NCBI GenBank assembly: GCA_004431415.1
Contig: QPMI01000436.1
Coordinates: forward strand, 558,001 to 622,000
Direction: 5' to 3'
Length of the DNA: 64,000 nucleotides
From: Cyanophora paradoxa CCMP329
Taxonomy: Eukaryota > Plantae > Glaucophyta
The translations under genes were made by a program, and so were the position numbers. Below the pieces are notes generated by a model. The model saw only the letters and a program-made list of their open reading frames with translations. It did not search any database and had not been told where the DNA came from. The first letter of the stretch is position 1; the number at the start of each line of letters is the position of its first letter. Below are positions 41,992 through 61,100 of this stretch, in pieces.

Positions 41992-42632
41992 TGCCACCGC
42001 CGAGTCGGCGTGCTCGAGCTCAAGCAATTAAGGCTGCTGCGCGTGCGGATCGAACAGCTGGCGGGAAAAAAGGCGGCCTACGTGTACCCAGCGATGATGA
42101 AATTTGATCCAGAACTAATTTCGATCGCGATCGATATCGATTTCGCTAACTTCGGAATTCGATTAGCCTAGTAGCGCTATCATAGTATCGATTATGCGCG
42201 GGCGCGGCTGCACGCTGGAAGACCCCATACGTATATGCACAAGCGTAGCGGCGTACCGTAGTACACTTCAAGGCTTAATTATAAGCTCAGCTTGAGCTTA
42301 ATTATAAGCTTGGCGTGCCGCGGGCGTACGTATTCCGCGCGCCGGGTCCCGGAGTCCGATCCGATCCGGAGTCCGACGGTCCCTGTATACGTATACGTGC
42401 CCGCCCTGCGGCCCCCGGGCCGACGCGTACGCGTACGCCTGGCCCGCATGCGCAGCATGCATGTTTCGAATTCCGGCCCTCCGGATCCGTGGGTCTAGAA
42501 CTGGGGACAGTATATGTGCTGCCATGCATATGCTGCATCGGCATGCTGCGGTGCTGGTGTGGGCGCCGGCGCCGGGTCGACGGGCCGTCTGGTCCGTCTG
42601 GTCCGGATCAATGGGCCGGGGGCCGCCGAATT

Positions 42633-45608
42633 CTACTTGAAGTAGGCGACGGTGAGGCCGCCGCCGCCCTCCTTCGCCACCTCGTAACGTGCCACCAGCG
42701 GGTGCGAGCGGAGGAAGTCGTGCACCGCCGCCTGGGTGGGTGGGGGGCGGCGGGGGGAGGGGGAGGGCGGGGGGGGGGGGGGGGCGGGGATCAGGACCGG
42801 AAGGCCTAGGCCTAGGCCTGGGGGACGGAGGCGCGGGCCGGGTCCCACCTTGAGCTGCCCCGTGCCGTGGCCGTGGATGACGTAGACGACGTCGGAGACG
42901 GCGTGGGCGCGGTTCAGCCGCCGCTCGAGCTCCGCCTCCGCGTCGTCCACCCGCATGCCCCGCTGCAAATGAGAGGTGAGGGGCTTCTTCTCTTAGAAGA
43001 ACAATAGAAGGCTCTAGAATAATATAATGTAAGCTTCTAGAAGCTTCTCCGCGCCGTCCACCCGCATGCCCCGCTGCCGAGGCGAGGGGCGAGGAAGAGG
43101 ACGAGGAGTTAGGAGGTAGGAAGGAAGTGGTAAGATGAGGGAGGGGCGAGCTGGAGCGGGAAGGCTAGGGGGGGTAGGGAGGATCGGGGCCGGGGGCGAA
43201 GAGTGTAAGTATAAGTATAAGGTTCGATAGCTATAGATTGATGAGATTGGCAGGCACCAGGTCGGCGGTGTTGGCGTCCATGCGGACGGTCATCGGCTCC
43301 CGCTTCTTGGCGTTCGCGGGGCCCCCGCTCACGGGCGCCGACGAGCGCACCTGCGCGCGCGGGCGCCGTCAGACCGCCTGCCCGGCCGAGGCCTAGACGC
43401 TATATATGGCTGGGCTAGGCTAGGCTAGGCTAGGCCGAGCCTGGAGGACCTAGACGTCGATGCGGCGGGCGGCGGGCGGCGGGCGGCGGGCGGCGGGCGG
43501 CGGGCGGGCTCTATGAGGAGCAGGCGCGCGCGCGCGCGGGCTGGGCGCGCCGTGCGCGCCTGCCAGCATAGGCCCGCCGAGGGGCGGACGGCCGGCGAGC
43601 GCCCAGCTATAAATAGCCTACCCTAGCCTTGCCCCGCTAGCCAGCCCAGAGGTCCCCCGCCGAGGGCTGCCGGCCAACGCTAGCCCATGGCCAGCCCCGC
43701 TAGCCCGCCCCAGGCGCACCGTCACGGATCCCGTCGGCGGCTTGCTCTTTGCCTTGGGGACGGGGGCGCCGCGGCCGCGGCCGCGGCCGCCGCCGCCGCC
43801 GCCGCGGCCGCGGCCGCCGCCGCCGCCGCCGCGGCCTTGGCCTGCTTCTTGCTGCTCGCGCGGGCCTCCCCCGCGCCGCTGCGCACGGCGAGAAAAGTGA
43901 GGAAGGCAGAGGGTGGTCCGCAGAGGGCTCTCAGCTAGCCGGGTACGGGCCCTGGACCGCGCGTATGTGAACCTGGGCTCTGGGACGGGCCACCCCCTAG
44001 GTTCCCAACGAGCTAGCCGGCCGCGGGGTGCTAGCCGCACCCCGCGGCCGGCCTACTCTAGGCGCGCCAGAAGCGGGCGGCGCGCGCTGAGGACCGTCGG
44101 ACTTGGGGGCGGGCCCCCGGTCCCGAGCTCTCCGCCCCGCACGACCCCACGGGCCTATTTATAGCTCCCAAGCGCTGAAAAGCCACGGGCCCCGGGATTC
44201 CGACCGCGCGGATTCGAACCTGGACTCGGGGGTGGGCCCCGGGCTCTCCGCGACGACGCCCGCGGGTACGCCGTCCACGCTGAAGACCTCGTGCAAAGGC
44301 ACCTGGGGGGGGAGGGGGGGGGGGGGGGGGGCAGGAGGTCAGCGTTAACGCCCTCCGCCCTCCATGCTTTCGCGCTACGAGTACTCAGTGACCGCCACTC
44401 CCCATAAGGCCTTCAACCCTTATCTCCGCATCCAGACAGGAATTTGAGCGGGAGGGGGGCAGGGGGGGAGGGGGGGGAGGGAGGCAGGAGGTCAGCGTGA
44501 ACGCCCTCCAGCAGCCCCGGCGCGGCCGGCTGCTCCCCCCACTCGCTCGCTGGGAGGTTGGGGCGCGCTCCGAGCCCTGGCTCGCTTGTACCCCCCCCCC
44601 CGAATGTACCCCCGCCGCCCCGTAGTCCCCCCGCCCGCACGCGTAGGAGCGGGGGGCCCGCTACGACGCGCCCCGATCCCTGGCTCGCTTGTAACCCCAT
44701 CTCCCCCCCGCCCGCACCCCGGCGCACCTTCATCTTCATGAGGCCGACGGAGACGAGGACCTCGCCCCCGCTGCGAGGGGGCGCCCCCCGGCCCCGGCGG
44801 TCAGTCGGCGCAAGAAAGCTGGAGGAAAGGAGCGACGATCTCATAGGCGGCGAAGGGGGCGCGGGGCGGGGCGCGATCACACCCCCCCCCACGGATCCTA
44901 GGGGATGAGTCTAGATCTAGACGAGGGCCTCGCCCCCGCTGCGAAGGGGCGCGCCCGGCTCCGGCCCCGGTCAGGGCCTCCGGGGAGCGCAGAGCTGGAA
45001 GACAGGATCCTAGGGGTTGAGCCTAGGCTTTCTGAAGAGCGGCAGATCTCATATGCGGCGAGAGAGCGCAGAGAGCTGGAAGAAAGCGGCGCTGATCTCA
45101 TAGGCGGCAGAGAAGATTGCGCAGACCCAGGATCTGGAGAGCGCGGGGCGGCGCCCTATCGCGGATCCTAGGCCTAGGGCCTAGCCTAGGCTAGGGCTTC
45201 TGGAGAGCGAGCCTTCTAGCGGGGCGGGGCGGCTAGAGCCCATCCTAGGGGGGCCTAGCCTAGGGCTTCCTTCTTGCGGGGCGGGGTGGACGGACGGACC
45301 TGGGCTCGGCGGCGATCTCGCCGCCCGACCCGAGGCGCTTGACCGTGACGCGGTCCCCCACCCGCGGCACGTACAGCTGCGCCCCGCCCCGCGGCCCCCG
45401 TCAGCGCTTGGCGTGGCTTCAGGGGGGAGGCAGTGGACGCGAGAATCCTTAGGCAGGAGGCAGCGGACTCTACTTAGACAGGGGGCAGTGGACACTAGGC
45501 AGTGGAGGCAGTACAACCGTGCCTTCGTACAGGACAGGTCACCGTCGGCGTTCAGCTTTCAGCGGGAGGCAGTGGACTCTAGGCGGGCGCCCGGGCGGAC
45601 CTCGGAGG
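42633..45608 (-). CDS. Duplicated 3' part of MutS2 (KOW + Smr exons): stand-alone gene, alternative 3' end or pseudogene
   Basis: Exon-for-exon copy of 47792-50540 (LYVPRVGDRVTV, GLMKMK, ADL|RGMRVDDA...IHGHGTG..LK|...GGGGLTVAYFK*). As assembled, exon 43720-43878 is 1 nt short in a G-run at 43756-43759. Confidence 0.75.
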
Positions 45609-45842
45609 AACCTCTCAGGGGAACTCTCACTCTCTGGGGGGAACTTTCAGGACCGTGCGGGGGGGGGGGGGGGGGGGAGGGGGAGGGGGAGGGGAGGGGG
45701 GAGGGGGGAGGGGGGGGGGGGGCGTGCGTGGGCTTGCGTGGGATTGTGCGGGGCGGGGCGGATCCCGGATCGGGGGGTGCTCGCCGGGCAGCTCGAAGGA
45801 GCGGGAGGCCAGGAGGGGGACGGGGCCAGGGGTCGGGGGTAC

Positions 45843-45935
45843 CACGCGGTCACGCACGATAGGGTCCCGCCTCCTCCGCCTCTTCGGCGGGGGCTGCTTC
45901 CCCTCCGCGGCGGAACTCGTTCCGGACTCTGGCAT
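45843..45935 (-). CDS. Putative 5' exon with a basic NLS (MPESGTSSAAEGKQPPPKRRRRRDPIVRDRV)
   Basis: Open frame with ATG at 45935 (the frame stays open to 46049), a PPPKRRRRR motif and a phase-0 donor gtacccc at 45842. Confidence 0.45.
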
Positions 45936-46520
45936 TGCGTCCTCGCCGCTCTCCCCCGGCTGCGCCGGCGTCGCCCCCGCAGCGTCACCCGCACCGCCCT
46001 CCGCGCCAGACTCCCCATCCTCACCGTGCCGAAATAGCGGGCGGCCCAATCGTCACTACGAATGGCGAGCCGTCTGCCAGGCATGCGTAAGCTGCGGAAA
46101 AAGCAAGGCACTGTGCTGCGGCCCGACGAGCGGCGCTCTCGAACAAGGACCCGGGTTAGCTATATATGTCGCAGATGCCGCATTGCGTCCCACGCAGCCG
46201 CGGAAGCCGCTGCGGCGGCGGTCGTGGCGCGACGCACATTCCGTTGTCTCAGACCGTCTCTAGGACCATCGCGCCAAGACCATGCACGATTATGCGACGC
46301 GTCAAGCGTACCTCCCATCAGACCAAGTCTGGCAAGTCGGTGCCCCAAGTCCCTCGAACGGGGTATAGATAGATCCAGAGGAGCAAAAAAACAACCTTGC
46401 GCAACCGGCAACCGCAGGCAGCTGAACAGGTGAGTTTCAATCGCCGCGGCGCCCTTGAACTGTAAGCATTAATGCTGACAGCGATGCAGCCCCATCCGCG
46501 CGCGCGGTCAGCAGATCTAG

Positions 46521-47163
46521 ATGCCGGAAAACGTGAATACCAGCAACATCGGGGCGGAGCGCGCCCCAAAGGAGGTCGCCGAAGCGCTGGAAAAGCAGCT
46601 TGAGCCCGACGACGTTCATCCTGGCGAAGAGTACGGAGATCCCTACATCTACGTCGACTTCAATGAGGACGCCATTCAGGCGCGCCGCGATCCTGCCAAC
46701 AACTTTGCTCACCGCGGCATCATTCCTGCGAATCCCAAGGGAGCGATCGCCCGCGCCCTCACCATGCGCGGCGGCCGGGCTTATGTCTACCCGAGCCCGA
46801 CCGCGGCCGGTGAGTCGCAGTCGATCTTCTCGTTCGCCTCACGGCAAGAGATCGAGGTGCACATGCCTCTAAGTAATTAAATAAGCCTTGGACCGCCCTC
46901 GAGCTCACGCTGCTCCAATTCTCAGGACGCCCTTCACAACATGGTGGATGATGTCAACCTCATCTGGGCTCTGAGGGCAACTGGCTTTCCTGACGTCGCG
47001 CGGGTCGTCGAATTCAGAGCAGGTTCGGCGTATGATCGTTCGCATTCACGCTTCGGCTGCTTGAATCATCCTTAAACTCGTTTTTGCGGCAGTACGGAAG
47101 GACGTGCCCGAGAGTTTGCAGCACTTAGCGCCTTTCAATTGCACCGTCCGCGTAGGCGTGTAA
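46521..47163 (+). CDS. Small hypothetical protein (3 exons)
   Basis: MPENVNTS...SRQEIE|DALHNMVDDVNLIWALRATGFPDVARVVEFRA|VRKDVPESLQHLAPFNCTVRVGV*, with GT-AG introns. Confidence 0.55.
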
Positions 47164-47791
47164 GAATCGGGCCGCTGGCTGGCTTCAGACCAGAGTTTTG
47201 TTTGCAATTGCGCCGCCGCAGCAAATAGAACTAAATGGCTTTGCATGTAAATAATCCGCAACAGCTTTTCGCACTACCAAAGCGCCCCCTGTCGTGCATT
47301 GCAATTGCGGCGCCGCTGCGCACTGCGGCATGCCACTGGGCCAGGCTGGCTTGAGCCTCGAACCAGGTGCGCCTAGGCCTGCATGAGCCTGTCCGACGGT
47401 TTGTATTGATAGCAAGCCGCGTAGCTATAGAAGCCTGGAGCTGCGCTAAGCGCTAGCTAGCGCTGGCTATATATGGACCTGGCTGGCTATATATAGCCAG
47501 CCAGGACCAGCTGGCTATATATGGACCTGCAGCTGGCAGAGCTCGAGCTAGCGCGCGCGCGTAACTTAGTAACTCGTGGTCGACGCGCGCCCTTACGCTC
47601 GTGGTCGACGGGCGCCCGTACGTTTACCCGGCCCGGCCCCGCATGCGTGCCCGCCGTCCGCGGTGTGCTCGTGTACATGTGGGCGCCGGCCAGCTATTTC
47701 TGGTCCGGATCGACGGGCCGGGGATACACCTGCAGACGGGCCGGGGTACACGTATACGTAGTGCGGGCGCGCGCGGGCCGCCAGGGTACGG

Positions 47792-50700
47792 CTACTTGAA
47801 GTAGGCGACGGTGAGGCCGCCGCCGCCCTCCTTGGCCACCTCGTAGCGCGCCACCAGCGGGTGCGAACGAAGGAAGTCGTGCACGGCAGCCTTGGGGGGG
47901 GGGGGGGGGGGGGGGGAGGAGGAAGGGGGAGGGAGGGGGGAATCAGGACCGGACTCGGGAAGGCGCATGCCCGGGGGAAGGAGGCCCGGGCCGGGTCCCA
48001 CCTTGAGCTGGCCGGTGCCGTGGCCGTGGATGACGTAGACGACGTCGGAGACGGCGTGGGCGCGGTTCAGGCGCCGCTCCAGCTCCGCCTCCGCGTCGTC
48101 CACCCGCATGCCCCGCTGCCGAGGACGAGGACGAGGGGTTAGAGGGTAGGAGGTAGGCAGTGGCAGGCGAAGGCCTAGGGGTGAGTAAGCTATAGGCTAT
48201 GTAGATGTATGTCGGCGAGGATGTAGCAGGCGAATTGAAGGGGTAATGTAAGCTTTAGGGGAGGGGGCATGCCTAGATAGTTGATAGGAAGGCGGATAGA
48301 TAGATTAGCTATAGATAGCTATAGATAGAAGAGATTGGAGGGGATGAGACTCTGAGATTGGCAGGCACCAGGTCGGCGGTGTTGGCGTCCATGCGGACGG
48401 CCACCGGCTTCCGCTTCTAGCTCTTAGGCTTAAGCGAATAATGTAGTAACAAGGCTTCTTCTCTTAGAAGAAGAATAATAGGAGCTTCTAGAATAATATA
48501 ATATGAGCACCAGGTCGGCGGTGTTAGCGTCCATGCGGACGGTCATCGGCTCCCGCTTCTTCGCGTTCGCGGGGCCCCCGCTCACCGGCGCCGAAGAGCG
48601 CACCTGCGCGTGCGAGCGCCGTCAGAGACCGCCAGCCTGGCCGAGCCCACTGCTTCTAGCTAGATGCTATAGCTGGCGTCAATGCGGCGGGCGGCGGGCG
48701 GCGGGCGGCGGGCAGCCGCAGACTTGGCCGAGCCAAGCCTAGCGCCCAGCTGACTTAGCCGAGCCTAGCTATAGGTGCTAGGGCAGGCCTAGCGTGCACG
48801 AGCGCCTAGCCTAGCACGCGTGCAGGCCGGGCGCGCCGGGCGCGCCAGGCTGACAAATCTAGTCTACCCGATGAGGGGCGCCGGAGAGAGAGCCTGTAAC
48901 CTAGCCCGGCCCCGCTAGCTAAAATAGCCCGCCCCAGGCTTACCGTCACGGATCCCGTCGGCGGCTTGCCCTTTGCCTTGGGGGACGGTGGCGCCGCCGC
49001 CGCGGCCGCGGCCGCCGCCGCGGCCGCCGCGGCCTTGGCCTGCTTCTTGCTGCTCGCGCGGGCCTCCCCCGCGCCACTGCGCACGGCGGGAAATGTGAGA
49101 AAAGCAGAGGCGGGCGGCGCGCCCGCGCTGGAGACCCCCTCTCTCCGGATAACTGCCCCGCCCCCCGCCCCCGAACGGCCCCATGGACCTGCAGCTACAG
49201 CTCCCAGGGCGTCCCCTCGGAGGGCTTTCAGCTAGCCGGGTACGGGTCCTGGACCGCGCGGATTCGAACCCGGGCTCTGGGACAGGCTAGCCTAAGTGCG
49301 GCAGTGGCGGGCGCCGCGCGCTCAAGAGCGTCGGACGGACCTGGATTCAGGGGCGGGCCCCGGGCTCTCCGCCCCGCACGACCCAGGGGCCTATTTATAG
49401 CTCCCACGCGCTTCTAGAACACGAGTGGGGCGGACCTGGACTCGGGGGCGGGCCCCGGGCTCTCCGGGGCGACGCCGGCGGGTACGCCGTCCACGCTGAA
49501 GACCTCGTGCAGCGGCACCTGGGGGGGGGGGAGGCAGGAGGTCAGCGTGTACCCCCTCCAGCCCCGGCGCGGCCCCCCCTTTCCCCAACGACTGTACCCC
49601 CGCCCTGCAGGCCAGTACCCCCGCCGGCCCGTACCCCCCCCCCCCCCCCCCCCCCCGCCCGCACCCCGGCGCACCTTCATCTTCATGAGGCCGACGGAGA
49701 CGAGGACCTCGCCCCCGCTGCGAGGGGGCGCCCCCCGGCCCCGGCGGTCAGTCGGCGCAAGAAAGCTGGAGGAAAGGAGCGACGATCTCATAGGCGGCGA
49801 AGGGGGCGCGGGGCGGGGCGCGATCACACACCCCCCACGGATCCTAGGGGATGAGTCTAGATCTAGACGAGGGCCTCGCCCCCGCTGCGAAGGGGCGCGC
49901 CCGGCTCCGGCCCCGGTCAGGGCCTCCGGGGAGCGCAGAGCTGGAAGACAGGATCCTAGGGGTTGAGCCTAGGCTTTCTGAAGAGCGGCAGATCTCATAT
50001 GCGGCGAGAGAGCGCAGAGAGCTGGAAGAAAGCGGCGCTGATCTCATAGGCGGCAGAGAAGATTGCGCAGACCCAGGATCTGGAGAGCGCGGGGCGGCGC
50101 CCTATCGCGGATCCTAGGCCTAGGGCCTAGCCTAGGCTAGGGCTTCTGGAGAGCGAGCCTTCTAGCGGGGCGGGGCGGCTAGAGCCCATCCTAGGGGGGC
50201 CTAGCCTAGGGCTTCCTTCTTGCGGGGCGGGGTGGACGGACGGACCTGGGCTCGGCGGCGATCTCGCCGCCCGACCCGAGGCGCTTGACCGTGACGCGGT
50301 CCCCCACCCGCGGCACGTACAGCTGCGCCCCGCCCCGCGGCCCCCGTCAGCGTTCGGCGTTGGGCGGGAGGAGTGGCTGCCCGAGCTTAAGCAGGCGGGG
50401 AGCGAGGGAGGGGGGAGTGGGCGGGCGGGCGGGCGGATCTATCCTTTCCCCAATCCCGAGGATCTAACCGGCGCTCGGATCGAATCTGCCCCATCTAATT
50501 TCGTCTCGATCCTCTAATCCACCCGGCGGACCTCGGAGGCCTCGAGCTCGCCCGAGGCGAGGCGCTCCGGCGTGTACTTCGCCGCGATCTCTTCCACGCT
50601 GAGGCGCGCCCGCTGCGCCGCCCGCCCGCCCTGCCCGCCCCGCGCGTGAGGGGAGGGGCGTGAGAGAGGAAGGTTTTGGGGATTTGAGCAGCACACGAGG

Positions 50701-53700
50701 CGCCACGGCGGGGGAAGGAGGCTTTAGGGGACGCAACCAACGTCTAGGGATTCCAGGGACCAAGCGCGAGAAGCCCAGAGGCAGTATATAACCAGAGACA
50801 AGCTCCGGCTCTGCTCCGGGGCGGAGCCTGCTGGAGGCCTAGATATATTTAGAATCTAATCATAAATCCGGCACCTGGCCACCCTGCTGGAGGCCGCGGA
50901 TGACGGCGGCGATCTCCGCGCGCGCCTCCGCCGCCGCCTCCCCCACCGCCCGCTCCTGCCGCCCCAAGGTCGGACCGAGGCGGGAGAGAATGGCAGAGGG
51001 AAGGCCGAGAACCAGGCGGGCCTCTAGAGCGAGGAGCGCAGGGCGGGTTATGAGCAGGCTTACGCTAGCTTATGAACCTAAGAACTTCGACTAAGAACTT
51101 CGCAAGCATAAGCTTGCGCAAGCTTGAATCGGCTAATGCGCTTTCTAGCTTTGGCTTCGGCTCAAGGCGGGCGGACCTGGGCCTCGCGGAGCTCGCGCTC
51201 GCGCGCCTCGAGCCGCCGCTGCTTCTCCAGCAGCTGCCGCCGCGCCCCGAGTCAGAATAGCGGGACCGGCAGGCCCAGGGGCGCGGAAATGGAGCGCGGG
51301 GAGGGGGTGGGGGAGAGGGTACGGGGTTGGAAGAGGGGGGTGGGGGTGGGGCGGGTGGAGGGGTTGGAAGGAGGGTGGGGGGTAGGGGATAGGAGAGATT
51401 GGAAGGAGGGTGGGGGGTAGGGGATGGGTTGGGGGGCGGGAGGTGGGGTGGGGTAAGGGGTGGGGGTGTCGGAAGGAGGGGTAGATGGGGCGGGGGTGGG
51501 AGGGGAGTAGGAGATTGGAAGGACGCGGGGGTGGGGGTTGTAACGAGAGGGGGGGGGGGGGAGGGTGGGAAGGCGGGGGAGGGGGTACGGACCTTCTGCT
51601 GGAGGGCGTCGGCCTCGGCGAGGCGGGCGCGGGCCGCCTCGTTGCGCGCCTCGAGCTCCCGCCGCTCCCGCTCCATCGCCACGATCACCTGGGGGGGGGG
51701 GGGGGGGGGGGGGAGGGGGGAGCGGTGTCAGATGAGCGAGCGCAGCACGCACGCCGCCCTGCTGTGGCCGGGCGAGGGCGGGCGGGCGGATGGATGGAGG
51801 CGAGAGAGGCGGCTCGAGATCTCTGCGGCCCGCAAGCGCTCTCTCTTCTCGTCTAAACGGGCGGCCCCGCTCGAAGCTAGGCTCGCCTCGGCGATCGTGG
51901 CGACCCGGCGGGCGGGGCGGGGCCCCTCACTCCCGTTCCTCCACTAAGAGGGGGAAAGGGACCTCTCCTCCCTTCTCTTCTAAGAAGACCCGCTTGAAGG
52001 TCACTCCCGCCCTTCCCGAAGACCAAAGAACAAAATCCATCGAAGGAACCCAAAGACCGCACCTCGTTCATGTCGACCTGGGGGCGGACGCTCCCCTCCT
52101 CGCCCCCGGCCTCCCCCGCCCCCACCAGCAGGCCCCGCGCCGCCTCCACGATCCCCTGCGAGGCGCAGGCGCGGGCAAGGTCAGGTCTGTAGGCTTAAAG
52201 GCTAGCTGCAGCTGGCCGTTAGCTATAGGGCGGCGTTAGGTTCCCCGGGCCCGTTAAGGTCAGGTTTGTAAGGGCGTTTGTAAGCGAGGCTCGCAAGGTC
52301 AGGTTTGTAATATGAGGGCCCGGCAAGGCCATGCTGGTTCATAAGGTTCGTAAGGCCTAGGTCAAGCAGGTCTCTTCAATTGCAAGGGCGGCGCCCCCCC
52401 TCCCTCCCCCCCCTCCCCTCACCTCCTCCATGCCGAGGCGCTCGGCGATGGCCAGCGCGTTGGAGCGGCCCGGGATGCCCCACAGCAGCCTGCGCGGGGG
52501 AAGGGGGAGGGAGGGGGAGGGGGTCAAAGCTTTCGGAGGGGACCGGAGGAGATCGAAGAGTGGAGGCGAGTGATCGTGAGACAAGGAAGCTTAAGAGGCC
52601 AGCACTCTAATTCAGAGGAGGGCGTTTATGGATCTAAGAGTCAAAGCGAGGGACTGCAGGGAGGGTGAGCGGGCGGGCGGTTGCGGACCGGTAGGTGGGG
52701 CCCAGAGTCGCGTCGTCGAACTCCACGCTCGCGTTCTCGAACCGCGCGTCCTGCGCACGCGGGATGAGAAATTTAAAGCTGAGGGGAGAAGGATAGAGGG
52801 ATGGATTCTAATGAATTCTAATGGATGGCCGTAAATTTAAAGGTAATCGCACCTGGTACTTGAGGGTCTTGAGCTCGCCGAAGTGGGTCGTGGCGAGCGT
52901 CACCGCGGCGCGCCCCGCGAGGGCCCGGAGCAGGGCGATGCCGAGCGCCGCGCCCTCCTGCGGGTCCGTCCCGCCCCCGACCTGCCGGAGAGTCAAGTTT
53001 TAATACCATGATACGGTGCAGGTTCCTTTAGATCTTGTCTACAATCGCTGAAATAAAGCTAACGCAATTTCCCCGTTTCTTTCTTAGACGATTTGAGAGC
53101 GAATCCGAGGAGAGTGCGGACCTCGTCGAGGAGGACGAGGGAGGAGGGCCCGGCGCGCGCCAGGATCCGCCGGATCCGCCGCACGTGCCCCGAGAACGTC
53201 GACAGGCTGCAGCCAGTCACCCGAAAAGGTCAGAGGGAGAACACGCTGTAGGGGGAAGGGTAGGATCCTGGGCCTTTTAGACGACACGACTTCTAGACGA
53301 TCCATAAGCACAATCTAGCTAGATAGTCTCTTAATAACAGCAACGAGGACGCGCCTCTGGACGAGCTTGAGACTTGAGACAAAGTTACGACATGAGTTTA
53401 AGAAATACGATCCGTAAGCTTATAATTAAGCACGATGTAGTATCTATCTTAATAAGATAAAAACAGCAACGAGGACGCGCCTCTGGACGATGGACTGCTC
53501 GTCACCGATGTCCGCGAGGACGGCGTCGAACCTGCGCGCGGGGGGACCCGCGCCCGTCAGAGGGGCGCCCCACGGCCCAGGCCCTAGGGGGGCCCAGGCG
53601 GGCCCAGGCTTCTTCGCCGCGCGAGGGGGACCAGAACCCTTCAGCTCAGCCCTTCAGAGGGGCGCCCCCAGGCCCAGGCCTAGGCCTCCAGCTTAGCTTG

Positions 53701-56700
53701 CCTTGCCCCTAGGCCTAGGCCTAGGCCCAGGCGCAGAGTCTCCAGGCTGGGGCAGGACGGCGTCGGAGCGCGCACCAGGGGAGCTCGGCCGGCTCCTCGG
53801 CAGCGACGAACATCCCCGCCTTCGCCATCAGGCACGCCAGGCCAACCTGCGCGGTCGGAGGGGCGGGGGGCGAGGGGCGGTGTCAGGGCACTGCAGCTGT
53901 AGCTAGATCTAGAGCTTTGTATAGGATCGCGAGGCGGAAAATGTAATTTGCTAGAGAGGCAGTCCAGCCTGGGGTAGCTATATCGAATATTAGGCTGGGC
54001 TGCCTAATATTCGCTCTAAACGGACGGCGCCCACGTGCGTGGCGCACCGTCTTGAGGGAGACGGTCTATCCACCCAAGGTTGGGCTGGCTAATATTCTAA
54101 TACTAATACTACTACTAATAGTCTAAATAGGATCGCTGGCTGAAAGGACGTCTTAATAGCTGAGGGCGCACCGTCTTGAGGGCGACGGTCGGTAGCTAGA
54201 TCTAGAGCTTTGTATAGGATCGCTTTAAGCTTTAAGCAATATATAGGATCATTTGCTAGAGGCAGTCCAGCCTGGGGTAGCTATATATAGAATAATTGGG
54301 CGCACGGTCTTGAGGGCGACGGTATACACAGGGACCCTACAGCTATACACAGGGACCCTAGGACAGCTGTGTATAGGATCTTCAATGAGCTACCTAGAGG
54401 ACCCTAGTCTTTTCTCTTTTCTCAAAAGATCTCTCTAAAAGGACGTCTTAATATATATTAACAGCTGAGGGAGGGCGCACCGTCTTAAGGGCGACGGTCT
54501 TGCCGCCCGTGTTGGGCCCCGTGATGGTCACCACGCGCAGGCCGGGCGCCAGCGCCACGTCGATCGGCACCGGCGCCGGGCCGCCCTGAGACAGAAAGAG
54601 GGTGAGAACGGGCGGCGTCCCCTCTAGCCAAGCGTAGCCGCCCCGGAGAGAGAAAGAGCGCGCGCGGCGCGCGCAGACAGACAGACACGGATCCAGTCCC
54701 AGCCTAGCGTACAACCCCCCCCCCCCCCCCCCCCCCCCCCCGTACCTCTTTCTCGTGCTGCCAGACGAGCAGCGGGTGCCGGCACCGCGTCAGGTACAGC
54801 CGGCCCGCCCCCTCTGCCGGGCGAGGGAGCTGAGCAATGGAGACGAGCAGGTGCGGGCATTTATGTATGTATGCGCCGCACACACCTCCGGAGGGGGGCG
54901 CGAGGGCCGGGGCGGAGGCGCGGAGCCAGCGGGCGTAGCGAGCGCGCGCCGTGGCGCAGTCGAGCGCCGTAACGATCTCCACGAGCGTCGAGATGTCGGG
55001 CCAGACCTGCGGGGGGAGGGGGGGGGCTCAGGGAGGGGTGGAAGCCTGCTTGGGCTCGCAGTGGCTAACGAGCCAGCGCAAGGGGCGCGGCAGACCTAAG
55101 AGGGGGAGGGGGGGGGAGGGGGCGGATGGCTCGGGTAGAGGTGGGACGAGGGGGCCTGGAGGGCGGCTCGCGCTCTCTAAAGACCCGAGACGGGGCGGGG
55201 GCGGGGGCGGGGCGGGACGAGCTATCGAGCTAACGAGCTAACGCAAGGTTGGCGAGCATAACTCATGGAGACGGGTTCTAAAGACTAAAGACGGGGGTGG
55301 AGAGGGCGGGGGGGTACAGGGCGCGCCTCGCGGACGCGGTCGGAGAGGGCGAGGAGGACCTCGCGGACGGCCTCCTCCTCCGCCCGCGCCAGCTGCCGCA
55401 GCGCGTTGTTCACCGTCACCGCCTGCGCCGGGGGTATGGGTTAGACGGGGGAGGGGGGGTGCGGGCGAGAGAGAGAGAGAGCGAGGCGGGACAGGGCGAG
55501 GCGGAGGAGGAGAGCGAGCCATAGGGCGGGGGGGGGGGGGGGGGGTGAGGCGGGGAGGGGGGTGCGGGCGAGAGAGAGAGAGCGAGGCCGGGGCGGGCGG
55601 CGGCAGTGCGGGCCTGGCGGGGCCTCTAGGGGGTGGGTTGGGTGGGGGGGGGGCGGGGGGGGGGCGGGGGGGTGGACCCAAGCGGGCCTGCTGGGCTCGA
55701 CAATGAGGCTGCTAGGGGGTACATCTCCAACGAGGAGGGCCCGAACCCCTTCTAGCCCGGGGGCTCCCGGGGAGGGGGGGTGAGGGCGAGAGAGAGAGAG
55801 AGAGAGCGAAGCGAGAGAGAGCGGGCGGGCCTAAGGGCGGGCCCTCAAGACGGGCCTAGAGGGGCCCCTTCTAGCCCCCCGGGCGGGCCGGGGGGATGGG
55901 GGGGGGGAGGGGGAGGGGGGGGGCGGGCCTGCTGCGGCTCGACGAAGAGGGTCATGCCCGAGTTGGACACGTCCAGCACGATGCCACCGACCCTGCAGAG
56001 GGGGAGAGTTGGGTTGGGTGGGGTAGAGAGGGTAGGATTGGGGAGGGGGAGGGGGGCGAAGGTGCGGGGGTACGCACGCCTCCTTGGCGACGGCCTTGAT
56101 GGGATCACGAAGCGGTCGTTGCGCGTCGTCACGATCGCCTCCTGCGACTTCGTGAGGGGGGGGGGGGGGGGGGGAGGGGTGGGGAGGAGGAGCCAGAGGG
56201 GGGGGGGGCGAAGTGATGGCATAGGAGGAGGGGAAGGGGGGGGGGGTGTAGGGCGGAGGGGGCGCTCAAGCTCTTCGGAGGGAGAGGGTGGGGGGTGAAG
56301 GGAAGGGGAGGGGAGGGGGGGAAGAGTGGGGGTACAGCGGGGCGCGCCTGGAGGGCGTCCTTGTACTTGACGAGGCAGCGCTGCATGATGTCCCGGGCCT
56401 TGCCGTACGCCTCCGCCTAGTTCGGGAAGGAGTTAGATAAGGTTATGAGGCTCAGTTTAGAATGGATGTGTTAGGTCGAGAGTTTCGGAAAGGAGTCAGA
56501 GAGGCTCAGAATGCTCATCCACTCTCTTTCGTTCAGAGTCTCTGTGCTTGGTGATCGGGCACCTTGCGGGCGCGGATCTGGGCCAGCTTCGGGCTCGCCC
56601 GGTCCTCCACCATCCCCTCCGGGTCCAGCGCGTTCTGTACCCCGGGGTTTAGGGGTGGGGGGCAGAGATCGGGGGTACGAAGCGTGCGAGCCTTGATGGT

Positions 56701-57764
56701 GCGCTCGAGGTCGGGGTGGGTGGTGAGGCCCTCGACGAGGCCAAGGAGCGAGGGGAACGCCCCCTCGGCCCCCTCGATCCCCTCGATCTGGCGCCGCAGC
56801 TGCGCTCGCGCACGCGCGGAGCTCGGCTTGACTTTTGATCTCCGCCAAGGCGGGTTCGAATCCGGGCGGCGGCGGCGGCGGAAGCGCACCGCACGGGCGC
56901 CGGCGAGCGTCGTCGCCACGCCATACAGCTCGCGCCCCGTGAGGACGTACCCCTCGATCCGCACGCGCTGCGGCGGGGGTCGGCGCAAGGCCCCGGGGGG
57001 GGGGGGGGGGGGGGGGGGACGGGGGGTACGTGCCTTGACGGATTCGGCGATGTCGCGTATCCCCTCGTACTTGAGGTCGATGCCCCAGCGGTTCTCGATC
57101 TCGTACACCTCCCGCGTCTCGCCCAGCAGCCGCTCGCTCTCCTCTGCGCGCGTGCGTCTCGTGAGCTCGAGGCGCAGCGGCGCGGCTGCGGGGCGCGCGG
57201 GCGCTCAAAGAGACCTCGGGTGGCGGCCGGGATGCCGGCGGGGCCCAGGGCGCGGCAGGCCGCGGCGCCGAGCTTCGTCGCCGCGAACGTGGCCAGGTGC
57301 TCGCAGACCTGCGCGCGCGACCGGCCTGAGGCGGCGCGGCGGGGGCGCGCCGTCTCGCGGCGAGGCGCACGCGGGACCACTCGAGCAGCTCCAGCGTCTC
57401 TTCCTGCACGGTCTTCTCGACCGCCGCGGCGCCGTCCGCCGGCGCCTCGCCCGCCTGCGGCACCGCAGACGCGCCTGGGGCGGAGGCGCCTGAGCGCGCT
57501 GCGCTGCGCTGGGCCGGCAGCGCCGAGCGCGTGCGCACGGGATTCGGGTGTGCGGGCCGTGCGGTCAGCGCGCCAGCGGAGGACCGGCCGGGCGATGCAC
57601 AGCCGCCAGCCGGTCGCGGGGGCACCGAAGAAGGCCCGCGAGGCGCTCGCCCTCGCCGGTGCCGCGCGCGCCGGCGTCCTCGGCGCGCGCCATGCGGAAT
57701 CGGTCCACGGACGCGACGCTAAGCAGCGCCCGATCGCAGGCACGGGGCTCACGAAGGAGCTCAT
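47792..57764 (-). CDS. MutS2: MutS2 (ATPase, coiled coil, KOW, Smr), probably plastid-targeted
   Basis: ETLELLEW, RASPKLAQIR, RNDRFVIP, GIVLDVSNSGMTLFVEP, Walker A TGPNTGGKT (~54500), IGDEQSI, SLSTFSGH, LLDE|VGGGTDPQEGAAL, TTHFGELK, GIPGRSNALAIAERLG, KOW, and Smr (DLRG..IHGHGTG). The N-terminal MSSFV... sequence resembles a transit peptide. Confidence 0.95.
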
Positions 57765-58199
57765 TGCAAATTGCGGATCCGCCGGATCGTCTGTCGGGGG
57801 TACGCGATGCTACTGTTTCCTGTACCCGGCGCTTGGGGCCGCAAGCTGCAGAAGCTGGATGGTCGGTTCCGGATTCACCGCGCATGCAGCTGCAGCCGCA
57901 GGCCTGCAGCTGCAGCAGAAGAGCTGCGCGATATAAGCCGCCTTCGACCGCCCCGCTCGAGCTCTTGATCGAAGGGCGCGCCCGCACGCGCGCAAAGCGT
58001 CATTCGATGGACGCCACGCGCTAGCGACTTTGCGCCCCGACGTCGACGGAGTGGCTCGTAGACGCGGCAGAGAGAGCGGATCGAGGCAGCCGCCGCCGGC
58101 CAGCCGATCGGGTTCCCGGCGGGACGGCCGCGGCCGCGGGAGCCAGTTCCCCAGCACGTTCGAGCTCCGATACGCGATCCGGCTGGCAAAGCGCGCTCT

Positions 58200-61100
58200 T
58201 TGGCGAACGATGTCGGCTGTGAATCCGGATCCCGCGATTTCGAACATGTACAGCGGGAGGAGTTGCGCGACGCATATGCAAGCTTAAGCGTCAGCGTAAT
58301 TTTTATAAAACTAATGTGCACAACGTTAGGGAGCCGATCTGGCGTCGCTAACCGCGCATCCCCCGCGCAGATTAGAATGGTGGGAGGTCCGTCGGAGGTG
58401 CTGCCATTCGATGGCGGCCCGGCCCACGGCCGGGTGCCTGTACACGTGCACGTCAAAGCGGAGCGGGCGTACACGCTCCGAGTGCTGGACGCGGAGATGC
58501 AAACGCGCGCCGAGTCGCGCCGCGCGAGCACGCCCACGGCCGCACTGGTCGTCCGGAGGCCGGGGCGCGTCGCGGTCGTCGAGATCGGCGCCTGGGGCGA
58601 CGGAGACGGGTCCGGAGGCCCGGGCTCGTTCCAGGGCGCCGACGCGTCGAGCCTGGGCGTCGCGATCGGTCTCGCCGTCTACAACGCCCCGCGGGTCCGC
58701 TATATATAATATATACGACACTCCGGTCGCCGACGCCGGCCCCGCCCCCCCGGATCCGGATCCCTGCGCGTGCAGCCGCAGTCGGCGGCGCTGACGCGTG
58801 CCCGCCGCATGCGCAGACTGCGCCGAGCGTGACGCTGCGGCTCACCATCGCCGACGACGGCGACGCTGTCGAAGCGATGAAGTGCGCTGCGCCGCGGGCC
58901 GCGCGCGCCGCCGCCGCGGGCCTTCAGGCGTTCCGCGCGCCGAGGTCCTCGCGATCGCAGGTTCTCGCTGCTGCAGCTGGAGCCCCCGCAGGAGCCGTGG
59001 CGCGATGTAGCGCTCCGCGGCTTCTGGGTGAGCCGTCAGGCCTAGGCCTAGGCTTCTGGGGCGGGTAGCTCTGCGCCCTAAGCCTAGGCCGCGCAGGTGG
59101 AGAGCGGGGAGCCGCTGCCCGGACCCCCGGCGCTGCGGCTGCGAGTGGAGGCGGACCCTGGGACCCTGGGCTCCGGCAAGCGCGCCCTCTCCGCCACCGA
59201 GCTGCGAGAAGGGGCCTTCGAGCGCGTGCGCATGCGCGCACTTAGGCGTGAGCGAGAGAACGGGGCCGGGGACGCCGCCACTCCTAGAACCAAAGCTCGC
59301 CTAGCGCCCCCACCACACCCGCGAGCTCGAGGGGCCTAGTTCTCCGCCTCCATCCTACCGCCCTCTCCGCCACCGAACTACGAGAAGGGGCTAGCGCTTT
59401 CGAGCGCGTGCGCGCGTACACGTACCCCGCCCCCGTTCCAGATCTGTTTCCTTTCCTTTTCCGCCCCTCGCGCCCCCTTTTCTCCCCCTTTCTCCTGTCG
59501 ATCGAAGTCCGAAGCAAAGGCCGCCCCGCCCCGCCCCGCCCCGCCCCGCCCCGGCCGCAGATCTCGAAGAGCCACCGGAACATGCCGCTGCCCCCGCCGC
59601 CGCCCCAGCCGCCGCCGCCGCCTCCGCCTCCGCCTCAGTCTCAGTCGTCCTCGACGACGCCGCCCCCGCCCCCGCCCCCGAGCCTCGCCGCCTCCTTTGA
59701 CCCCGAGAAGCTGGCGGCCGCCGCGCTCGCCGCCTCGGCCCTCGCATCGGACATCGATCCCCGGGGCCAGTTCGACCTCGAGACGGCCCTCTCCGGCCTC
59801 CGCATCGCGCAGGAGGCGCTGGACTCATCCCCCCCCCGGCCCCCATGGACCCCTTCCCCTCCCCCGCACCCGTCCCCGCCCCCGCCCCCGCCCCCGCACC
59901 CGCCCCCGGCGCCCGAGGGCGGAGAGCCTCCCCGCGGTTCGTGCACCTTTCCTTGAGCTTAGGCTTCGGCCTTCCTTTCCTTCTCTGAGGAAAGGGAACA
60001 TACGTTCGCCTCCCCCCGCAGCGCTGGCGTACGCCGTCGTTGACCAGCGGGACGCCATCATGGCCCTCGTGGAGCGCACCTCGGCCGCCCTCGAGGCCCG
60101 CCCGCTCCCCGACGGCCGCCCGCAGCCCGCGCTGGCCGCCCTCGCCGCCCTCCCCGCCGTGCTGCGCGCCCTGCGGCAGCCGACGGGCGTGGAGCCCTCG
60201 CCCGAGCCCTTCCTCGGCCCTCTCTTCGCCGGAGACGCGTTGGACGAGCCCTCGATCGCGGGTGCACTGGCCGCCCTGCCCTCCTGGGAGGATCCGGAGC
60301 CCCGCTTCTTAAACACGGCGCCGTACCTGGCCGGGATCGAGTCGTGCCTGGAGGCGGCGCGGGCGGCCCCCGGCCCCGCGCAGCGCGCCGCGGCGGCCCT
60401 CGAGGCGGCCGGGCGCCTCTGCAGCGACGCCCTCCTCCTGTCCCCCTGGGTACGTGCGCTCCTTCTGGAGCTCAGATCCCGCCTGTTCTGATCAGATCTG
60501 ATCTGATCCGAGCAGGTCCGCTCCTTCGAGGGGCGCCTCGCCCTCCGCCGCGCCCTCGTCGTCATCCGCGAGGCATCGGGCACCTTCGCACAGGTATTTA
60601 CACGTACCCCCCCCCGCCCCTAGGCCGTTCGGATTCGCGATCGTCCCCTCGGGTCGAATGAGGAGTCGAGTCGTTTGTGTGAGCAGGTGGCACGTGTGGC
60701 GGACCACTTGCGGGCCGCCGCCGTTCGGCGGCTCCGTTCCCTGTGCGCGTGTCCCCAAATCTCGATTGCGACGGCGCCGCCTCTGTCGGCGCTGACGCGT
60801 ATATCTACGTTCCCCCCGCGGCCGCAGACCCCGCTCGGAGGACGCGATCCGCGGCGCGCTGGACGCCGTCGAGGCGCTCCGGTACCCCTGCCCGACTCCA
60901 CCTGCACCTTCCTCCACAGCGCCTCTGCTGACGCCCCGCCTCCGATCCGGATTTCGATCCGTCCCGGCGTCGCATGCAGCCCTAACATGTGCGACCGCCG
61001 CGGCCGGCGCCTTGGACCCCCCCCCTTCCCCTCTCCTAATCACAGGTACGACGTACCCCCCCCAGGTACCACGCGGCGCCGGACCTGCACGTGGTACCCC

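Follow-up and report, generated by a model that had tools for sequence, protein, structure and literature searches.

A duplicated 3′ end of the Cyanophora paradoxa MutS2 gene under purifying selection that probably encodes a small Smr-domain protein

In the nuclear genome of the glaucophyte Cyanophora paradoxa, the 3′ end of the MutS2 gene has been duplicated, and the duplicate, here called copy A, is likely to be a selectively maintained gene with a MutS2-type Smr domain that is living now or was so until very recently. The locus lies in a stretch of 64,000 nucleotides (nt; hereafter the window), which is C. paradoxa nuclear DNA, as two gene models of the EukProt collection (g12476 and g12477) map to it at 100% identity. 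The Smr exons of copy A differ from those of the parent gene by 15 synonymous changes and no nonsynonymous ones, which argues that copy A is more than a dead relic. Judged from the sequence, it probably makes a small protein of the Smr or KOW-Smr type.

The parent gene was identified as MutS2 by a Walker A motif (ITGPNTGGKT) near 54.5 kb and by the sequence GGGTDP...ATTHF, which includes the TTH motif, at 52.8–53.0 kb. The TIGR01069 (mutS2) profile matches the parent at positions 315–347 and 416–458 and matches the tail at positions 708–790 of 790, and the Pfam matches to MutS_V and Smr agree with this identity. The spliced model was searched exon by exon, and exons were joined only for frame checks and substitution counts. 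The MutS2 proteins of plants are of cyanobacterial origin and plastid-localized, with one copy reported for glaucophytes (PMC12292046), and plant MutS2 has been assigned to plastid ribosome quality control (2025 preprint). The tail of the parent (copy B) is made up of exons of 77, 43, 83, 133, 93, 114, and 99 nt, all in frame.

Copy A is a repeat of ∼3.0 kb on the same strand as the parent (Table 1). It contains the last seven MutS2 coding exons with their introns and extends ∼70 nt into the 3′ flank; at its other end it keeps 9 nt of the exon before these seven, together with the donor of that exon. Colinear blastn blocks pair 42633–45414 with 47792–50360 at offsets of 4.95–5.3 kb, and the two copies are 88–95% identical with many indels, the exception being a single block of 712 nt. 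A sequence-only reading of this DNA had called the MutS2 3′ end duplicated, and the colinear blocks bear this out. The same reading had placed the end of homology at about 45608, just inside the donor of the preceding exon. At this position an 18-nt match (45591–45608 against 50522–50539) that includes the donor cctccgag/gtccgcc is found beyond an unalignable stretch of intron, and no homology between the copies was found above 45608 and 50539. On the downstream side, homology fades ∼70 nt past the stop codon, near 42565–42597. A comparison of copy A with 50540–60000 yielded no homology except for low-complexity tracts, and copy A is thus without the exons for the MutS core, clamp, and ATPase; it also lacks the N-terminal exons of the parent and hence any targeting peptide that they carry. 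All parental GT-AG pairs are intact in copy A. That the introns, the donor, and the flank were all copied points to a duplication at the DNA level and not via an RNA intermediate. In the explanation favored here, a 3.0-kb genomic piece of the nuclear, cyanobacterium-derived MutS2 gene, introns included, was copied to a site 2.1 kb downstream in the same orientation. A unique spacer of lower GC content (45609–47677; 2.1 kb) separates the two copies, and no terminal inverted repeats were found in it.

The near-identical block of 712 nt spans exons K1 and K2 and the intron between them, and its flanks are only ∼85% identical; judging from this pattern, it is the result of recent gene conversion between the copies. 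The upstream end of this tract coincides with the start of unalignable intron sequence. Across the 5′ two-thirds of the intron that precedes K1 (45415–45600 against 50361–50521), no homology exists between the copies, and each carries repeats of its own (agtccactgcctcc in copy A, gattagat and ggatagatcc in copy B), which are minisatellites that were either replaced or are fast-evolving.

The Smr domain (PF01713) is matched by both copies with an E-value of ∼4e-12, scoring 46.5 bits for exons S6–S7 of copy A and 47.0 bits for the parent against a gathering cut-off of 25.7. Exon K1 by itself gives a weak match to PF20297 (MSSS, the MutS2/Smr-associated SH3 domain, which is KOW-like), with 13.4 bits against a cut-off of 26.8. 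The copy A product falls well below the thresholds of two related families, as the g12476 protein (P0001) scores 67 bits with TIGR01069 (cut-off of 400) and the SmrB equivalog model PRK04946 scores 20.5 bits (cut-off of 128).

Table 1. Positions of copy A, its exons, the parental gene, and neighboring features in the window.
Feature	Position	Strand	Description	Basis
Copy A	42565..45608	-	Duplicated MutS2 3′ end	blastn, MAFFT against 47678-50539
Parent tail (copy B)	47678..50539	-	Exons 50246-50322, 49675-49717, 49436-49518, 48944-49076, 48511-48603, 48002-48115, 47792-47890, all in frame	blastn, MAFFT
Parent MutS2 ATPase exons	52811..54789	-	Walker A and GGGTDP...ATTHF motifs	TIGR01069
Conversion tract	44703..45414	-	712 nt, 99.4% identical to 49650-50360; spans K1, K2, and their intron	
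Exon K1	45300..45376	-	Inside conversion tract; weak MSSS match	PF20297
Exon K2	44728..44770	-	Inside conversion tract	
Exon K3	44220..44302	-	End of KOW/SH3-like domain and start of linker; 3 synonymous, 3 nonsynonymous differences	
Linker exon L4	43720..43878	-	+27 nt of Ala codons, -1 nt relative to parent	
Frameshift homopolymer	43756..43759	-	G4 (C4 on coding strand); parent G5 at 48980-48984	
Exon S5	43258..43350	-	Linker end and beginning of Smr (...TADL); 4 differences, synonymous only	
Smr exon S6	42849..42962	-	RGMRVDD...HGHGTGQLK; 4 differences, all synonymous	
Smr exon S7	42633..42731	-	With TAG stop; 7 differences from parent, all synonymous	Pfam Smr
First exon of g12476	43456..43569	-	MLAGAHG...RRID; parental intron sequence; holds (GCCCGCC)n	tblastn, 100%
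AT-rich filler region	42963..43073	-	∼85-nt filler and 27-nt decoy of S6 acceptor/exon start; 43062-43073 is the micro-exon (RGMR) of g12476	
Candidate 33-nt exon	45601..45633	-	RVRVPLRGSSE; last 9 nt and donor inherited; acceptor after C-rich tract; putative	
Candidate first coding exon	45843..45935	-	MPESG...PPPKRRRRRDPIVRDRV, with PPPKRRRRR; open frame	
Orphan gene g12477	46521..47160	+	Three exons, 167 aa; in spacer, GC 0.54-0.61	

The substitution pattern across the Smr exons provides the evidence for selection. Over the 306 nt of S5–S7, the 15 differences between the copies are all at third codon positions. Counting by the Nei-Gojobori method gives 79 synonymous and 224 nonsynonymous sites, with a dS of 0.22 and a dN of 0. 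Introns are 84–85% identical over aligned pairs (∼15% differing), which puts neutral divergence in the same range as dS. Had the copy drifted since its birth, ∼24 nonsynonymous differences would be expected, where none is observed; even with constraint on the parent only, an outcome in which 15 of 15 changes are synonymous has a probability of ∼2e-6. A neutral control from within the locus is provided by short decoy duplicates of exon ends that are unused as exons (48369–48418 in the parent, 43047–43073 in the copy). They contain four nonsynonymous differences and one synonymous difference, and they differ from the real Smr exons at p = 0.001 (Fisher). Gene conversion cannot create such a synonymous-only bias because it erases differences whatever their codon position. 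In exon L4, three differences are synonymous and one is nonsynonymous, and the inserted 27 nt preserve the reading frame. By this sequence comparison, translation of the copy A Smr exons has followed the frame of the parent for almost the whole time since the duplication, and the lack of any change in 224 nonsynonymous sites confines a neutral phase to at most about a tenth of the history of the copy.

Several observations weigh against copy A being an intact KOW-Smr gene. As assembled, the frame derived from the KOW exons ends at a TGA (43724–43722) with the Smr exons out of frame, and no alternative GT/AG sites that restore the frame were found in the sequence near L4 and S5. Exons K1 and K2 are silent on selection because recent conversion made them match the parent, and the equal numbers of nonsynonymous and synonymous differences in K3 are compatible with relaxed constraint. 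The KOW-Smr open reading frame (ORF) is without an established start codon. Finally, g12476 and g12477 are numbered consecutively, and the public annotation has no model over K1–L4 or over the two candidate exons of the chain with a nuclear localization signal (NLS) that is considered below. An exhaustive protein search with L4 returned only a low-complexity repeat protein, and neither a model of the parent nor one containing the K exons.

Exons K1 and K2 of copy A match those of the parent, and in the assembly a 1-nt frame break separates the KOW-like and Smr domains. The sequence-only reading had pointed to a single G missing from the homopolymer in L4, and the comparison with the parent confirms a run of four in place of five; the exon measures 159 nt in copy A and 133 nt in the parent. 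Homopolymer contraction is a typical error of Quiver-polished RSII assemblies. L4 is ∼90% GC, and Illumina reads for the correction may have been lacking there; we regard the chances that the run of four is a residual contraction in the assembly as about even. Alternatively, the contraction may be real, with Smr translated from its own start as in g12476, or it may be both real and very recent. The window evidently stems from the published long-read assembly of C. paradoxa, which was built from PacBio RSII data with Canu and two rounds of Quiver, and the Illumina majority-rule correction was carried out at 95% identity, such that areas of zero coverage stay as PacBio sequence (PMC6704402). A metagenome scan for the context of the G run, at either run length, gave no matches.

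Should the contraction be real, copy A would make an Smr-only product like g12476. This model (EukProt EP00741, tig00020629_g12476.t1, 143 aa) was found by a word search with the last two Smr exons, and tblastn maps it to 42636–43569 at 100% identity, with the 7-nt microsatellite included. The predicted protein starts at an ATG in the intron between linker and Smr (43569) and continues through S5, a 12-nt micro-exon, S6, and S7. An Smr-only gene, in which the frameshift would be real and of some age, the KOW and linker exons are relics and a small stand-alone Smr protein starts downstream of L4, is a tentative alternative that deserves the closest attention among the rivals. The public model has exactly such a shape, the assembled sequence carries the frame break, nonsynonymous and synonymous changes are equally numerous in K3, and three synonymous changes in S5 that precede the internal ATG fit translation entering from an upstream exon. 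However, the first exon of g12476 consists of parental intron sequence with a 7-nt microsatellite, and the region contains stop codons in the parent, all of which gives it the look of predictor filler; from its sequence, this exon probably reflects the choice of a start codon by the predictor. In addition, the changes in L4 (three synonymous to one nonsynonymous) and its in-frame insertion hint at constraint, and the splice sites of the K exons are all intact. The (GCCCGCC)n microsatellite is found in the L4–S5 intron of both copies (43455–43507 and 48677–48713) and is unlikely as a coding exon.

The micro-exon of g12476 owes its existence to an AT-rich filler that lies just inside S6, together with a 27-nt repeat of the acceptor and the first bases of the exon. 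A predictor is unlikely to have preferred this 12-nt exon over the simpler in-frame intron from S5 to S6 without intron hints from RNA-seq, and the genes of this genome were called by BRAKER1/AUGUSTUS with RNA-seq (PMC6704402). The micro-exon may thus be an indirect sign that copy A is transcribed, as far as the behavior of the prediction pipeline can be reconstructed.

In the explanation that we favor, copy A is a maintained gene in which the Smr domain has most likely kept its connection to the KOW/SH3-like domain, for a predicted protein of ∼220 aa plus an N-terminus; the 1-nt contraction in L4 would then be a residual PacBio RSII homopolymer error. The same contraction could instead mark a recently dead pseudogene that was functional for most of its history and was then inactivated by a 1-nt deletion. 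The frameshift and the TGA in L4 would indeed make the transcript a target of nonsense-mediated decay. We nevertheless consider a pseudogene unlikely, since the zero nonsynonymous changes in 224 sites restrict its neutral phase to roughly the last tenth, and a residual homopolymer error is at least equally likely in this assembly.

The 5′ end of a KOW-Smr gene would have to be new. The sequence-only reading proposed a chimera in which an NLS exon is spliced to a 33-nt exon and from there to the KOW exons. Both exons are present and in phase as described, and the chain is in frame, but so are 154 others: in the 920 nt that separate the retained donor from g12477, 155 single-intron GT-AG chains bring one of nine ATGs into frame with this donor, and 22 of the 155 start at the ATG of the proposed chain. 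Read without splicing, the frame extends upstream no farther than 45852 and contains no ATG, and two ATGs in another frame (46084 and 46018) lie upstream of the proposed one. This GC-rich DNA abounds in basic runs. Translated in six frames, the window contains 76 runs of at least five Lys or Arg residues, and ∼0.5 would be expected in the 920-nt upstream region, where KRRRRR is found; the basic run of the candidate NLS exon is at chance level. The 140-aa ORF that holds the NLS exon had no relative of 77–245 aa in the word search, and the exon was not found in any protein of the searched collections.

A nuclear KOW-Smr protein of ∼264 aa, translated from the ATG at 45935 through the NLS exon, the 33-nt exon, KOW, linker, and Smr, therefore appears improbable. 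In its favor, the reading frame of the chain stays open and in phase, and the chain leaves through the inherited donor at 45601, which any first exon would naturally use; its acceptor at 45633 (a C-rich tract followed by CAG) resembles the other acceptors of the gene, and the head-to-head position with g12477 could give a shared promoter region. Set against these points are the 154 other in-frame chains, the chance-level basic run, the upstream ATGs in another frame, the ORF without relatives, and the lack of a public model over it. The chimera also requires the frameshift to be an error and is for this reason a special case of the maintained gene rather than an exclusive rival. Similarly speculative, and given little credence here, is the idea of a young eukaryotic KOW-SMR gene in which partial duplication has freed the collision sensor of an organelle-targeted MutS2, with new 5′ exons and a new promoter shared with g12477, to act without an ATPase either in another compartment (the nucleus or the cytosol) or in the cyanelle, there regulating MutS2.

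Another use of the copy would be as an alternative 3′ cassette, in which read-through of MutS2 and splicing from the donor at 50531 to the acceptor at 45376 produce a full-length MutS2 with a slightly altered tail. The region of the K1 acceptor is identical in both copies, and overlapping untranslated regions are common in this genome (PMC6704402). This is nonetheless very improbable, as it needs read-through of the parental 3′ end and antisense transcription across g12477, the tails differ only in the linker with no evident gain, and the same frameshift breaks it. An assembly artefact (a misplaced haplotype or collapsed repeat), for which the near-identical block could in principle be explained by cross-mapped correction, is hardly credible given that the genome was judged haploid (PMC6704402) with few SNPs, that the sequence has no Ns, that neutral divergence between the copies is ∼15–20%, that the filler insertions are at different sites in each copy, and that a unique spacer with an annotated gene lies between them.

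The sequence-only reading had labeled the duplicated module a nuclease. Copy A has the Smr motifs HGHGTG and DLR, which align with HGKGTG and DLR in Bacillus subtilis MutS2, and it lacks the catalytic His of the DxH motif of the SmrB/Cue2 type. The nuclease label is doubtful, as the variant with DLR in place of DxH does not cleave mRNA in B. subtilis MutS2 (PMC10897456), although the copy A domain might still nick DNA, as has been reported for Thermus thermophilus Smr. In B. subtilis, KOW and SMR bring MutS2 to collided ribosomes. The DLR and HGxG residues point towards the mRNA and serve binding and not cleavage, and ribosome splitting requires the ATPase (PMC10897456). By analogy, the role of the copy A product is most likely that of an ATPase-less module for collision binding rather than a nuclease. 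Such a module would bind where collided bacterial-type ribosomes meet, could not split them without the ATPase, and with DLR for DxH would probably not cut mRNA. The site of action hangs on the N-terminus of the product.

The spacer between the copies contains g12477 (tig00020629_g12477.t1), which is arranged tail-to-tail with MutS2 and head-to-head with copy A. Neither g12477 nor the other ORFs of the spacer matched Pfam, PHROGs, or NCBIfam, and the word search found no homolog of g12477. No mention of contig tig00020629 was found in the literature.

The introns of the locus hold further duplications. The same AT-rich filler of ∼85–90 nt, whose core TTCTTCTAAGAGAAGAAGC occurs only twice in the window, is found at 42963–43073 and 48419–48510, a different site in each copy. 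The filler is flanked by a duplicate of a splice junction. In copy A this is the S6 acceptor, with 27 nt duplicated, and in copy B it is the S5 donor, with ∼50 nt; these duplicates differ at 1 of 27 and 4 of 50 positions, which suggests two filler insertions of different ages. From its sequence, the filler resembles a mobile or templated insertion of small size, tolerated since splicing removes it. A third junction duplication, at 44330–44520, is confined to copy A, where the region that holds the branch point and polypyrimidine tract of the K3 acceptor (ggagggcgtt.acgctgacctcctgcc...) is doubled around ∼95 nt of unique filler, lengthening the intron from 156 to 425 nt. Both copies also carry a decoy of the K2 acceptor with ∼20 nt of the exon start (cgcag/cgggggcgaggccctcgtct, then tagatctag) at 44919–44965 and 49865–49911, located ∼170 nt upstream of the real K2 and inside the conversion tract. 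The locus thus displays gene conversion and repeated splice-junction duplication within one gene. Just past the MutS2 stop, at 47440–47530, there are three copies of CCATATATAGCCAGC, an 18-nt palindrome of the perfect type, and similar TATATAGC motifs are present at ∼46165 and in introns. Strings that resemble a tRNA T-arm (GGTTCGAATCC and GGTTCGAATCCGCGCGGTC) occur in the K3–L4 introns of both copies (44195–44225, 43955–43990, and 49250–49290). ARAGORN and Rfam detected no tRNA genes or Rfam families in 40–52 kb, and these strings may be remnants of a tRNA-derived short interspersed nuclear element.

The public proteome already holds copy A as an undescribed model of 143 aa; the finding of synonymous-only selection is new. 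If expressed, copy A would be a dated case, traceable intron by intron, of the collision-sensing tail of MutS2 becoming its own gene in a eukaryote, much as KOW-SMR and SmrB exist as stand-alone proteins in bacteria. The claim of one MutS2-derived gene in glaucophytes (PMC12292046) would then need qualification, and a natural ATPase-less KOW-SMR fragment would be at hand for asking how the tail acts alone in plastid ribosome quality control.

Among solved structures, the best match of copy A is to the KOW/SMR part of B. subtilis MutS2 (PDB 7QV3 and 8QPP; E-value of 5e-6), with which it shares the tail region of TIGR01069 (positions 708–790) and the DLR and HGxGTG motifs. Unlike that protein, copy A is without the coiled coil, clamp, and ATPase, and the variable residue of HGxG is His and not Lys. 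Stand-alone KOW-SMR proteins are known from Bacteroidetes (PMC10897456), and a protein of this type (P0002, 161 aa, PF20297 and PF01713) would have the same two-domain layout as copy A if the frameshift is an error; it aligns over the Smr exons of copy A with an E-value of 2.5e-4 and likewise has DLRGMRV and HGHGTG. Copy A, however, arose independently and recently, when part of an intron-rich nuclear gene was duplicated. Moreover, the Bacteroidetes KOW-SMR proteins keep DxH (PMC10897456), whereas copy A has DLR and its fusion is broken as assembled. SmrB and SmrA of Escherichia coli, Cue2, NONU-1, and N4BP2 are Smr proteins of small or modular build whose targets are collided ribosomes; copy A differs from them in lacking an N-terminal hook, CUE and UBA domains, and the catalytic histidine of DxH. 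In the Viridiplantae, the functions of MutS2 are split among the paralogs MutS2A and MutS2B, with and without Smr (PMC12292046); these are ancient duplicates of the whole gene, in contrast to the young, tail-only copy A in a glaucophyte reported to have a single MutS2. As a general class, chimeras that arise by partial duplication also retain an inherited donor and need a new 5′ end, for which the upstream exons of copy A are candidates only.

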